The notes: a model not told the origin generated them from the sequence alone. Shown: positions 867 to 38,144, counted from the first letter of the stretch. The stretch: 64,000 nt of DNA from Octopus sinensis (GCF_006345805.1 NC_043013.1:22010001-22074000), one strand, 5' to 3'. Program-made: numbers and translations.

Positions 867-1097
867 GAATATGTCCTTTAGATTTTATTGACAAAGCCGC
901 TATACCTTCTAACTATGATTTGGGTTTCTTTTCTGGTTCCAATTATACGCAATGTCTGCTCAATTGCGAAGCAATACCAACTTGCCAATCGTTTGACTAT
1001 AACTTTAATTACAAACGATGCTTGTTGTTATCTAAAGATCATACAACTGCTCAATTGAATTTTTACACAGATTGGACTTACACCGAAATAAACAGAG
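867..1097 (+). CDS. PAN/Apple-domain internal exon, unit A (231 nt, phase 1-1): (G)ICPLDFIDKAAIPSNYDLGFFSGSNYTQCLLNCEAIPTCQSFDYNFNYKRCLLLSKDHTTAQLNFYTDWTYTEINR
   Basis: Acceptor is cttcttattcttacag|GA and donor is AGAG|gtaagg. Length is a multiple of 3 with no stops. It has the PAN pattern C-x3-C-x5-C-x-S-F-x-Y...C-x-L and an NYT sequon. Its paralog is at 33901. Confidence 0.9.
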
Positions 1098-1289
1098 GTA
1101 AGGGCGTCATTTTCTTGTTTTTATTTATTTTTTTGTTGTTGGAATTATACACAGTCAGTTGGACAAGACTTAGGCACCACCTTCAAAAATGTGTTAGTCT
1201 GTTATATTGAGGTTGCGACTTTGATTTACTTGGCTCTATCGATTGGCTAAGTCCAATGTCATATAAAGGTATGGACTCAATAACTAATT

Positions 1290-1625
1290 AGATAGATAGA
1301 TAGATAGATAGATAGATAGATAGATAGATAGATAGATAGATAGATAGATAGATAGATAGATAGATAGATAGATAGATAGATAGACAGACTGACAGGAAGA
1401 TAGACAGACTGACAGGCAGATAGACAGACTGACAGGCAGATAGACAGACAGACAGACAGGTAGACAGACAAGTAGACAGACAGATGGCTAGATAGATAGA
1501 CAGATAGATAAATAGATAGATAGATAGATAGATAGATAGATAGATAGATAGATAGATAGATAGATAGATAGATAGATACATACATACATACATACATACA
1601 TACATACATACATGCACACGCATAC
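1290..1625. repeat. (GATA)n/(GACA)n/(CATA)n compound microsatellite
   Basis: Direct reading. Confidence 0.97.
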
Positions 1626-1639
1626 ACTCATACGTACAG

Positions 1640-2305
1640 ATAAATACTAATACTTGATGAGCAATAGGAACATAGATAGCACCAAACCTCCATACTGTGA
1701 TGGAAAATGTCGGCTCTGCTATACCAGTGTGGAAGATGTCACCCACATCATCAGTAGTTGCGACAAAATGCCTACGAGATTCTATCTGCCCCTGAGGCAT
1801 GATATAGTTGCGAAGACTATTTACAATGCAATGCTACCCATAGGAAGGACTGCTCGGACGTATAGATCAAAGCCATGTTAGAACCATCAAGTAATCAGAT
1901 CATATGAAAGCAAGGAATACTGTTGGAACTCTCACCACCAAAAACAAAGAACAATTGGTGCAGAGATAGAAGACCTGATATTGTTCTTTGGCACAGGGAA
2001 AAAAAGCTATGCATTGTTGTAGGGGTAAACTACCCAGCGGGTGTGAATGTACAATCAAAAGTTTTAGTAAAATAGAACATTTAAGAAAAACTTACAGGTC
2101 TTGTACCCTGACCATAAAGTCTCGTTTGCACCTTTCATCAGAAGTGCTTTAGATTATGTACCAACAAATATGCACATTTGCAGAAAAACCTATAAATACT
2201 CGGTTTCACAGAGAAAGAGCAAAAGAAAAACTGACGCGGATTGTCCAAATCCAATCTTTTAGTGGCACAGTGAAGATTTGTAAAACATTCCCAAAATACT
2301 CCATC
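1640..2305 (+). mobile_element. R4/Dong-clade LINE 3' fragment (zinc knuckle plus restriction-like endonuclease), decayed
   Basis: Translates to [32 protein letters not shown], then RRPDIVLW, and ends in VKICKTF. Confidence 0.85.
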
Positions 2306-2399
2306 TGTGGTTCTTATGTCAATAGATGCATACGATTGAGTGTATGCATCGACAGTGCCACCAACACACCAACTCAACCACATATTTGCAATCACCGGG

Positions 2400-34125: not shown

Positions 34126-34260
34126 GTAAGTGCAAATCTCTTTTATTTTTTATTTAGACAATACTGAGATACCACCTTCAAAAGCTTTAGCTTGTTATGT
34201 CACCCTAGTAGTTTATTTTACTCTTTATCAAATGGTTGAGTCCAGCTTGTCCTTAAGGTA

Positions 34261-35530
34261 CGAGGGGCGTTCAATAAGTAATGCCCCTGACCCACTTCCC
34301 ATAGCAGTAGAGCAACGACACTTGGCACAGTTATTAGTCTTTTCCTACATAGGAACTACTCAGAGTTATGCATTTCTCCCATCGTTTGATACAGCTCTGG
34401 AGACCGTTTTTGTAGAAGACCCCAGCTTGGTCCTCCAACCACGACGTGACTTCAGAAATCAAGGCTGCATCATCTGGGAAACGCTTTCCTTTCAAAATCA
34501 ACTTCATGGCTGGGAAGAGGTGAAAATCAGAGGGTGCAAGGGGAGGAGTTCATAGCTGCACGCCTGTGCTTCTGATCTGGCGACACGCGAGTTGTGGACC
34601 GGAGCGTTGTCCTGCAGGAGGAGGATGCCTTTGCTGATCTTGCCCCGCCTCTTGATTTTGATAGCTTCTCTTAATTTCCTCAAAAGTGAAGCAGAATAGG
34701 CTCCTGTAATTGTGGTACCCTTTGCCAGGAAATCTGTCATCACTACTCCGTCCTGGTCCCAGAAGACTGTGAGCATAACCTTGTCAGCGGAGGGCTGCAC
34801 CTTTGCCTTCTTTGGAGGAGGTGAGTCACGGTGCTTTCACTACATTGACTGTGCTTTGGTCTATGGATCATAGTGATGGACCCAGGTTTTATCCTGTGTG
34901 ATCAGTCTTTTGAAAAATTTTCACACATCTTCTTGGCACATCTCCAAATTCATCCTCGAGCACTCAACGCGTTCTTGCTTCTGGAAAGATGTGAGCAACC
35001 TGGAAATCCATCTGGCAGACACCTTTTGCATATGCAAATGGTCATGAATGATAGTTTCCACAGACCCGGTACTAATCTTGACCTTATGGGCTATTTGGCG
35101 AATAGTTATGCGTTGACCTTCCAAAATGGCAGCCTCAACTTGACGGACAGACGTCTCATCAACGGCAGAAGGGGGCGACCAGATCTGGGAGCTGTTTCCA
35201 CAGAGTTCCGACTATGTTTGAATTCACAATGCCAGCGTTTTACAAGGTCATATGATGGGGCATCATCACCATAAGTTACTTTCATTTCATCAAAAGTCTC
35301 CCGTGGTGTGAGTCCTTTCAAATACAAAAACCAGATCACTGCTCGACATTCAACAGGCTCCATTTCACACTTGACTCAGTTCAAACACCTGTAAATCAGA
35401 AACCACAATTAGTCCAGAGCTGTAATTCGCCACGTAATCTATAGAGGTATAAATAAGTGCACATGCAAAGTTTCAGCTAGATCAAACAACTGCACGTGGG
35501 TCAGGAGCATTACTTATTGAACGCCCCTCG
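34261..35530 (-). mobile_element. Mariner transposon, 1270 bp, both ends intact, transposase disrupted
   Basis: 35-bp TIRs CGAGGGGCGTTCAATAAGTAATGC[C/T]CCTGACCCAC with 1 mismatch and a TA TSD. Translates to MEPVECRAVIWFL, VSARWI, VFWD, QDNAPVH and LAPSDFHLF in shifted frames. Confidence 0.96.
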
Positions 35531-37835
35531 TATGTAAATTGAGGGACTAATTAAAGACCAAACTATTGATCACTCCTATTAGACACACACACACACACAC
35601 ACACACACACACACACACACACACACACACACACACGATTAAGCACATAAATGCAAAACAAGGTGGAAAGAAGTAGGACTCAAGTACCGAAGGTAGGGTA
35701 TTATGCTCTCTTTTTATTCAAGCTGCAAAAACATCACAAAAAACTGTTACCGTTTCACGTTTCCGTCGTCTAACATTTGTGATCAAGAATGGAATAAAAT
35801 TGTGATGGTACATGTAATATATAATTTGATGTAATGCAATTTAAGGCATAAGCATTGGAATTTGGTTGGGTAACTTATATTCAAATTATAAACAGTATTG
35901 TATTCGTTAACGGTTGGTCGAATTGAGGGTTATAAATTGAACAGTAAAATATATTATATTATCTATATATGTAAAAGAGAGTTTGTGTGTGTATGTGTGT
36001 ATGTGTGTGTGCGTGTGTGTGTGCGTGTATGTGTGTATGTGTGTGTGTGTGTGCGTGCGTGTATGTTCCTTATGTATTCGAAAGCTGTGTTGCCGATTTT
36101 GACGTGTGGGGTATCATAAGATTCATTAATCTTTCGGCTACCAAATAAACTATATTTTTATTTCCATATTTTCGAAAATGTACACATAAATATCGTACTA
36201 AAATAAGCTACAACCAAAAATATTTCATTAAAAGACAAACATATTTCTATATGTCAAGAGGAAATACAGTCACTCACCCTCCCTTTCTCTCTCCCTCTCT
36301 CTCTCTCTCTCTCTCTCTCTCTCATGCACACGCACTCATACACACTAAAAAGAATGTATTCAAATGTATTTATGTACGTGTATATGAAAGACAATGTATA
36401 TGTGTGTGTGTGAGAGAGTGAGTTACTTAGACAGACAGGCAAAATAATACATACATGACAACACACACACACACGGTAAAACTTCTGTACGAATCATGTT
36501 ATTTCTCACTGTGTGCACGCCCAAAATTACAGCTGAACTCCACTTAAAAGGTTCTTTTACTATTCTGTAATTTGTGTTTGTGATGAATTTATTTTGAAAA
36601 CCTGATCTTCGGTAAAAACTGAAAATGAATTTTTCCCAGAAATTCTGTCCTTTACCTGTCGCCTCTAGCATGTCGTCTCTAGCATGACATTTGCGCCCCA
36701 CGCCTCTATTTTTCCCTAAACTTCTTCCGATTCCTACGTATTTGATAGAGTAATTTAGGATTTCGCCAAAACAATTCGTTCTCTATATTTTAATCTTCTC
36801 TCTCTCTCTCTCTCTCTCTCTCTCTCTCTCTCTCTCTCTCTCTCTCTCTCTCTCTCTCTCTCTCTCTCTCTCTCTCTCTCTCTCTCTCTCTCCATAATTG
36901 ACAGTAAATAAAACACATATATTAAAGAGGTAAGGATTTCTTATATAAAATCATCTTATGTAAATAGGGAAGTCGATTGTATTAAAGAGATTAGGATTTC
37001 TTGATTAATAGTAAAGAAATCACGGAAGATATTAAGATCATCAGAAGAATAAGAAACTATTTTTATTCCATTTCAGTACTTTGGAACGAATTCAAACAGT
37101 CAAATTCACTGGACAAGATTAACTCTGTGGGATGTGGTATAATATTTTTCGACTCTTATTATTTCGTTGACAGTAAGACCCTCTTTTCGTTTATTTTTTG
37201 TGTTTTTCGTTTCTGTTTCTGGTTTCTCGTCTTTAATTCATTGATCTCTAGTTCTTGCCACAAAAAATTAAAAAATAAATAAATATCTCTTTCTTCTACA
37301 TCACATAAGTATTTCTACTTAGAAACTTAATTCTTAATTAAATATATTAACAGTAAATTAATGATTAATATTCATTCAAAAGGATGTTGTAAAACAACCC
37401 ACAAATACATTTAAAATCTGGCAAATGGATTAATATTAATCTCCGTTGTCATTAAAATTCTCAACACGCTTCCTTACTAATCTGCAAAGAAATACCTCAA
37501 TACATCTCGCCGGTAATACGAGAACCACTCTCCCTCCGAGACACCCAACAACATACCCCTTCTCACTCTCCCGTCATACATGCTATTTCACCAGCCAGAT
37601 CCCACATCAATTATTATCCCCAGTCCTTCCTTTCTAGATTATGCAACACTCACGAACTCACTCCCTACTCACACTAACCTAAAGATGTCCAAACGGAACA
37701 TGAATAAAATCGATCTATCGAATCAATAGGCCACATCTATTCGTTTCCCTTGTACTTTGTCAGACTAGAGCAATAATTTAATTTATGCTCTTATATTTAT
37801 TGTGTTTCCTCTTTCCAATTTTTTTTCTATTGCAG

Positions 37836-38026
37836 AAAAAGAAACTAATGACTTTACAGCTTATTCAACATTTTCCTTCAAACCAAACCCATATCCCAAC
37901 CTTGTAACCGAGGCCCAAATGGATGCTCACTCGGTTCTGGATTGTTCCCGTTTATGTTTGATATCTTCTACATGTACCGCCTTTTCATATACTAACACTA
38001 AGTGCCTAAAGAAGAAACTGATCTGA
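37836..38026 (+). CDS. Terminal PAN/Apple exon, unit B: EKETNDFTAYSTFSFKPNPYPNLVTEAQMDAHSVLDCSRLCLISSTCTAFSYTNTKCLKKKLI*
   Basis: Acceptor is ttttttttctattgcag|AA, phase 1, joining 34125 in frame (R-E-K). It has the S..DC...C.....C.AFSY....C.L pattern, then TGA followed by AATAAA. Confidence 0.87.
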
Positions 38027-38138
38027 ACTTTAATGGAATTCACCCCCAAAATTACTTCTCAATGAAGTGTGAGCAAGACTTCAACGTATCACGTTTGCTA
38101 ATAATAATTATATAAGATAAAATGTGTATTTCTTTGTG

Positions 38139-38144
38139 AATAAA
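38139..38144 (+). terminator. Polyadenylation signal AATAAA, unit B
   Basis: It lies about 113 nt after the stop and is conserved with unit A. Confidence 0.6.

Follow-up and report, generated by a model that had tools for sequence, protein, structure and literature searches.

What do five short PAN/Apple-domain exons, set far apart on an octopus chromosome, belong to: a gene family in working order, a decaying duplicate, or part of a much larger protein? The exons lie between positions 867 and 38144 of a 64,000-nucleotide stretch of the Octopus sinensis genome (CM016875.1:22,010,001-22,074,000, assembly GCA_006345805.1; hereafter the window), in which a reading made from the sequence alone had seen a hidden tandem cluster of genes, possibly for small secreted PAN-only proteins. 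PAN modules are extracellular binding domains. On balance, the comparisons described here suggest that the window probably holds, in tandem, two copies from a multigene family restricted to octopods, the products of which would be small secreted PAN proteins acting as soluble (lectin-like or protein) binders, with the second module, PAN2, diversifying. The kind of protein is already known and the main gene is in RefSeq; what is new is an unannotated, frameshifted neighbour, a corrected family-type gene model, and evidence of accelerated change in PAN2.

Gene identity and exon structure

A protein search with the spliced product of three of the five exons (C, 19697-19954; D, 33901-34125; and E, beginning at 37836) returned a match of 99% identity to protein P0001 (265 aa), named "uncharacterized protein LOC118766702 [Octopus sinensis]" in RefSeq and placed by its record at CM016875.1:22,023,828-22,048,583 of assembly GCA_006345805.1. 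P0001 is rebuilt at 100% from six window exons (13828-13858, 19087-19122, 19697-19954, 33901-34125, 37836-37973 and 38474-38583), and LOC118766702, extending from 13828 to 38583, is therefore an annotated gene rather than a hidden one, as had been supposed when no named gene was recognised; the record calls no other gene between 3.8 and 48.6 kb. The five PAN exons themselves stand as first described, with AG acceptors in all and GT donors in the three internal, phase 1-1 exons, and the predicted joins of 19697+33901+37836 (RD-G-RCP and INR-E-KE) are those of P0001. The proposed three-exon gene has instead six or seven exons, and its supposedly unknown N-terminus lies inside the window.

All exons of the gene are on the plus strand. 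Exon 1 (13828-13858) carries the ATG and the start of the signal peptide (MLRRNYLQII), ending in phase 1 at the donor GTAAGT, and is part of the exact rebuild of P0001; exon 2 (19087-19122; 36 nt, phase 1-1) supplies the remainder, (F)LFYISLTFGNG. Together they encode MLRRNYLQIIFLFYISLTFGNG, in which a basic start and a 13-residue hydrophobic core are followed by small residues ahead of the probable cleavage site, and which by inspection reads as a signal peptide that is likely cut. Exon 3 (19697-19954; 258 nt, phase 1-1) encodes the PAN1 module, including the sequons NCS and NRT, and exon 4 (33901-34125; 225 nt, phase 1-1) the variable PAN2 module, which carries a 2-codon deletion, in frame, within its C4-C5 loop by comparison with the sister gene LOC118766701. 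The sequon NYT is also present in the exon sequences, as the sequence-only reading had listed.

The introns preceding the two terminal exons of the window, taken to be uninterrupted over 3.7-5.4 kb, each contain a 96-nt exon that had been missed (5868-5963 and 37077-37172). In LOC118766702 this linker exon (37077-37172; phase 1-1) has an intact AG/GT pair, an open frame and a conserved cysteine, following the family consensus LWN.F.QS..L.KINSVGC...FDSYYFVD; it is absent from the RefSeq model of the gene and present in the models of most paralogues, including the sister gene. Because its phase is 1-1, forms with and without the linker are both in frame. Indeed, all internal exons of the family are phase 1-1, so that modules could be skipped or shuffled with the frame kept.

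The last exon (37836-38144) encodes a short PAN3 module that ends 6 residues past its fourth cysteine at a TGA (38024-38026), followed by a conserved 3' untranslated region (3'UTR) and an AATAAA signal (38139-38144), an arrangement that agrees with the stop and polyadenylation signal first proposed. RefSeq departs from the family at this point as well as at the linker: its model leaves the last exon through an internal donor (ACAT/GTACCG, after 37973) and exchanges the family-type C-terminus for a non-conserved alternative terminal exon (38474-38583) used by P0001 only, the matching sequence of the sister gene carrying a stop. Most full-length paralogue models end in ...TCTAFSYTNTKC.LKKL(I/V) followed by a stop, and the window DNA encodes exactly the same ending, giving a predicted family-type product of 278 aa when the linker is included and 245-246 aa when it is skipped.

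Other models of the family (P0006, P0175 and P0173) also exit the last exon early, with the canonical end intact in the DNA of P0006 and P0175. Each of the four RefSeq models that leave the last exon does so by a different internal donor, and the canonical C-terminus is intact where checked (the window gene, L002 and L005); the differing donors (window 37973/38474; L002, L005 and the P0173 locus) may reflect genuine alternative splicing or else an artefact that recurs in the annotation. The family's RefSeq models do not agree with one another, with the linker skipped, internal donors varying and one copy missing, and curation against long-read transcripts would help.

The 3'UTR was observed to be conserved in its own right: the ~118 nt from stop to AATAAA (38027-38144; 6662-6782 in the upstream copy; and equivalents in L002, L003 and L004) are 88-94% identical among five paralogues in two species, a level that equals or exceeds that of the coding sequence in the last exon (75-92%), and in another frame read ..FNGIHP.NYFSMKCEQDFN.. 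in most copies. The idea that this segment is a frameshift relic of a lost PAN3 end was rejected as the main explanation, given that the PAN_1 profile stops short of it; it is countered also by a frame relative to the coding sequence that varies among copies, by a 1-nt gap in one copy, and by distant members, including that of Argonauta, that stop at the same place.

PAN modules and family distribution

Searched singly against Pfam PAN_1 (PF00024; cut-off 21.4 bits), exons C (26.7 bits) and D (26.2 bits) of the gene and exon A of the upstream copy (32.8 bits) exceed the cut-off, and the spliced C+D+E product reaches 54.7 bits (E=8.9e-15), well outside what chance would give and in agreement with the domain assignment made from the sequence alone. 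The last module scores 23.8 bits with PAN_2 (cut-off 21.1 bits) and 22.5 bits with PAN_1, scores obtained only in a construct that includes the frame-shifted 3'UTR tail. A cysteine core of C-x3-C-x5/6-C-x9-11-C is present in all four PAN exons and is kept across 13 family members, in which the cysteines of PAN2, linker and PAN3 are all conserved and all five PAN2 cysteines, with several core aromatic residues, are nearly invariant. Modules carry 4-5 cysteines, the total per protein being odd in most members, and the outer C1-C6 disulfide of six-cysteine Apple domains is missing, since a cysteine at the C6 position is found in no module of any family member.

The family comprises at least 15 models in O. 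sinensis and extends to O. bimaculoides, O. vulgaris and Argonauta hians, with a common plan of signal peptide, PAN1, PAN2, a linker with one cysteine, and a short PAN3, and no catalytic or membrane segment. LOC118766702 shares its exon plan, signal peptide, three PAN modules and KCLLKKLI-type C-terminus with LOC118766701, LOC118766692, LOC118766704 and LOC118766713 of O. sinensis and LOC106868906 of O. bimaculoides; UniProt labels the paralogues 'Apple domain-containing protein'. In every member PAN3 ends 4-8 residues past the fourth and last cysteine, and Argonauta P0016 and the distant O. bimaculoides proteins P0017, P0021 and P0040 are no exception; because the whole family shares this plan, the short module is a regular feature of long standing, as opposed to damage. 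Neither the window nor the annotated paralogues contain an exon for a catalytic or transmembrane segment, and no serine-protease domain is attached: PAN3 is followed by a stop and poly(A) signal, and additional domain exons are lacking in window and paralogues alike. Together with the signal peptide, this supports the prediction of small, secreted, PAN-only products.

Word-indexed protein searches gave matches only in O. sinensis, O. bimaculoides and O. vulgaris. When 1.84 billion representatives were searched exhaustively with the family profile, 205 matches were obtained at E<=0.001, of which those covering most of the profile length were O. bimaculoides proteins and the single Argonauta hians protein P0016; the weaker matches were generic multi-PAN proteins, namely octopus giants with 14-21 PAN plus Sushi repeats, one annelid protein and one oomycete protein. 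Squid, cuttlefish and nautilus are not represented among the ~20 top profile matches that are named. The family thus appears, from the searches so far, to be restricted to octopods. The description of an expanding, 'cephalopod-specific' family holds in that the genes are multi-copy, locally clustered and lineage-restricted, but must be narrowed, as named matches with the full architecture come only from Octopus species and Argonauta hians. A literature search found nothing on the family, including in one skin-mucus proteome paper and its supplements.

Upstream unannotated copy

The second member in the window, also on the plus strand, is represented by its PAN2-linker-PAN3 part, with its 5' exons off the window. 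Its PAN2 exon (A, 867-1097; 231 nt, phase 1-1) has an AG/GT pair and an open frame, and its linker exon (5868-5963; 96 nt, phase 1-1, AG/GT), which encodes LWNDFNQSNTLDKINSVGCGIRVFDSYYFVD, is matched by paralogue linkers at E=2e-16 in tblastn. The last exon (B, 6470-6661) has an AG acceptor and is followed by AATAAA at 6777-6782; exon and flanks match those of exon E at 89-92% identity. Within the run 6504-6509, exon B contains one extra T relative to exon E and every other copy, and the frame entering from exon A or from the linker meets a stop at 6628-6630, ahead of the PAN3 cysteines, as opposed to the family-frame stop at 6659-6661.

The earlier proposal that 867 and 6470 form the 3' end of a paralogue is accordingly right in that these exons belong to a family copy, but in the sequence as assembled the extra T breaks the PAN frame, and no annotated protein corresponds to it: the nearest annotated protein to exon A is just 65-68% identical, no database protein exceeds 68% identity to this copy, and the record has no gene call at this place. 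The copy is either a pseudogene or a victim of a homopolymer error in the assembly. 'Tandem cluster' is a fair description in a loose sense only, the window containing two family copies and nothing related between 38.6 and 64 kb.

Rates and mode of evolution

Among five diverged copies, the overall ratio of non-synonymous to synonymous divergence (omega, from dN and dS respectively) is 0.45-0.69, and dN among paralogues is 0.4-0.6 in PAN2 versus about 0.1-0.3 in PAN1 and PAN3. PAN2 differences among diverged paralogues run at about 4 non-synonymous (N) to 1 synonymous (S). PAN2 and its flanks are old (dS 0.6-1.0, with the flanks at the noise level of the identity measure, ~76%), and PAN1, linker and last exon, with their flanks, are 85-94% identical; this mosaic history across exons points to exon-scale duplication or gene conversion.

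Younger pairs give a sharper view of PAN2. Between the window gene and its sister, dS is 0.081, dN 0.074 and omega 0.91, with PAN2 differing by 10 N : 0 S. In the young pair LOC118766704 and LOC118766713, PAN2 differs by 19.5 N : 0.5 S, and its exon has 8.8% differing sites versus 3.6% in the surrounding non-coding DNA (P=2e-4), with PAN1, linker and PAN3 at or under the non-coding rate; these comparisons of exon with non-coding DNA are based on BLAST mismatch counts. Pooled over both pairs (~30 N : 0.5 S), the PAN2 excess is significant at P=0.001-0.009 (Fisher). Change in PAN2 with retention of its cysteines and core is the pattern expected of a folded scaffold with a changing surface.

Related systems and proposed function

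Sequence and fold searches identified the PAN-only galactose lectins SML-2 and MIC4 as the closest solved relatives, followed by modules of plasminogen, HGF and factor XI. The apicomplexan proteins SML-2 (Sarcocystis muris, PDB 2yil) and MIC4 (Toxoplasma, PDB 4a5v) are likewise small, secreted and composed of tandem PAN modules only; they belong, however, to an unrelated lineage, with ~15-35% identity over 40 residues, and the octopus genes, unlike them, include a linker exon and encode a third module of reduced length. Factor XI, plasma prekallikrein and the N-terminal PAN domain of plasminogen and HGF fall within the same superfamily and have the C-x3-C...C...C core in common, whereas the octopus family lacks the protease or kringle part and the outer disulfide of these vertebrate Apple proteins. 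The nearest non-family relatives of the PAN1-PAN2 pair are the octopus giant PAN+Sushi proteins LOC118764742 (2643 aa) and LOC106869390 (1730 aa), which are ten times larger, with 14-21 PAN repeats in addition to Sushi repeats, and from which the small genes may have arisen.

By likeness to PAN modules elsewhere, the protein would be secreted, N-glycosylated and disulfide-stabilised, and may act as a soluble binder, either lectin-like or protein-binding, with PAN1 and PAN3 forming a conserved frame and PAN2 a putative recognition surface diversified among paralogues. A more ambitious proposal, which we offer tentatively and regard as doubtful on present evidence, is that the octopod secreted three-PAN family constitutes a diversified recognition repertoire (for immune or mucosal patterns, or in gamete and egg-coat interactions), in which a hypervariable PAN2 is carried on the PAN1/PAN3 frame and variety is kept by positive selection together with exon-scale duplication or conversion in clusters. 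Cephalopods are not known to have antibody-type adaptive immunity, and fast-evolving, lineage-restricted secreted families are a common animal route to new recognition, defence or reproductive systems; a lectin-like repertoire of PAN-only proteins, if real and if one of its modules is under diversifying selection, would be a concrete candidate for such a system in octopods.

Alternative explanations

Several observations weigh against a family of functional, diversifying binders, or against placing LOC118766702 within it as a working gene. The similarity to SML-2 is weak, at E=1.6e-4 over 40 residues of the PAN2 core, and an AlphaFold2 model of paralogue P0003 is poor, with a mean predicted local distance difference test (pLDDT) of 48 and a predicted template-modelling score (pTM) of 0.31, only the PAN3 region reaching 60-80 with a strands-helix-strands arrangement (the PAN fold being an alpha-helix packed against a five-stranded antiparallel sheet); Foldseek searches with this model had PAN proteins as top matches at TM-scores (template-modelling) of just 0.17-0.35. 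The real product is uncertain because the RefSeq model skips the linker and exits the last exon early. Exons of the window gene differ from those of the sister by 6.8%, against 4.8% in 13.8 kb of aligned non-coding DNA (P=0.007), and this excess, like the omega of 0.91, is equally expected from neutral drift of one copy; exon-scale gene conversion, moreover, could mimic part of the PAN2 signal.

Drift of this kind underlies the proposal that LOC118766702, like the upstream copy, is a recent duplicate that is decaying or non-functional and drifting neutrally within a family that may work overall. An exon divergence at least equal to that of introns would fit, as would the loss of a PAN1 cysteine that is present in 8 of 10 other aligned members that include PAN1, the deletion in the PAN2 C4-C5 loop, the odd internal donor and non-conserved terminal exon of the RefSeq model, and the frameshifted, unannotated state of the neighbouring copy. 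We nevertheless consider decay unlikely: the six or seven exons have open frames and canonical splice sites throughout, the deletion is in frame, every cysteine of PAN2, linker and PAN3 is kept, and only 6 positions of the gene deviate from the >=90% consensus, a smaller number than in several annotated paralogues, while the one-sided PAN2 substitutions are seen more strongly in another pair. To much the same degree we doubt that the high divergence of PAN2 stems from exon-scale conversion or mosaic ancestry instead of positive selection on a binding surface. Between the window gene and the upstream copy, dS is indeed 0.94 in PAN2 but 0.12 in linker and PAN3, and a 1.3-kb 3' block is 86-89% identical with the PAN2 flanks at noise level; a converted tract, however, should carry synonymous changes in something like the proportion found among diverged paralogues, and such changes are nearly absent from PAN2 in the young pairs.

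PAN modules are mostly part of larger proteins, and the giant PAN+Sushi proteins P0014 (21 PAN_1 stretches) and P0015 score E=7e-68 and 4e-54 against the family profile, which raises the alternative that the exons belong to a larger receptor, protease or giant multi-PAN protein with other exons elsewhere. This is very improbable, given a start codon and signal-peptide exons 5.8 kb ahead of PAN1, a stop and AATAAA after PAN3, the same short architecture annotated in three Octopus species and Argonauta, and the lack of any other called gene around the locus; tblastn with the exon peptides and 165 related proteins detected no additional PAN exon, either between 38.6 and 64 kb or on the minus strand. 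Small, soluble, three-module proteins with a changing PAN2 remain the account that we prefer.

Chromosomal arrangement, introns and repeats

Family members are spread along CM016875.1, with LOC118766704 (12.94 Mb) in tandem with LOC118766692 (12.99 Mb), LOC118766713 at 14.47 Mb, LOC118766701 at 21.93-21.95 Mb on the minus strand, and the upstream copy and LOC118766702 in the window at 22.01-22.05 Mb on the plus strand; many further family models are on unplaced scaffolds. LOC118766701, the sister of the window gene, lies ~64-80 kb upstream on the opposite strand, and the two are collinear over the entire gene with introns ~94-96% identical. Fragments consisting of linker and PAN3 flank LOC118766701 on both sides (L005 2951-4662, plus; 34172-34952, minus), one with a doubled PAN3 exon and one inverted, which suggests independent duplication of the gene's 3' part.

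The description of introns filled with transposons is borne out for the PAN1-PAN2 intron of the window gene. This intron, 13.9 kb in length, contains two reverse-transcriptase fragments of long interspersed nuclear element (LINE) type: the first belongs to a 4.7-kb block (28921-33588, minus) that is absent from the sister gene and includes an open reading frame (29128-30717, minus) with RVT_1 and zf-RVT domains, and the second is at 24675-25346 (plus; RVT_1, 43.9 bits). A third fragment (47390-47857, minus; RVT_1, 54 bits) lies downstream of LOC118766702. A Pfam scan of 19 long open reading frames in the window detected reverse-transcriptase fragments only, and Rfam and tRNA scans of the window gave no matches. 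Two further blocks, at 16241-17787 (1.5 kb, bordered by TA microsatellites) and 34260-35530 (1.3 kb), are present in introns of the window gene and not in the sister.

AT microsatellites abound in the remaining introns. Long AT-rich tracts of this kind (TAA/TAATAA, TA, TAGA and ACAT) occur in the window at 20195-22260, 53285-53672, 58246-58713, 1289-1610 and 11461-11711, and are a source of spurious long open reading frames. An interspersed element with internal tandem repeats of 61-66 nt is found in both orientations at 57218-57618, 60345-60561 and 63243-63475, two of its copies contributing inverted arms (60345-60415 and 63405-63475) that are 94% complementary.

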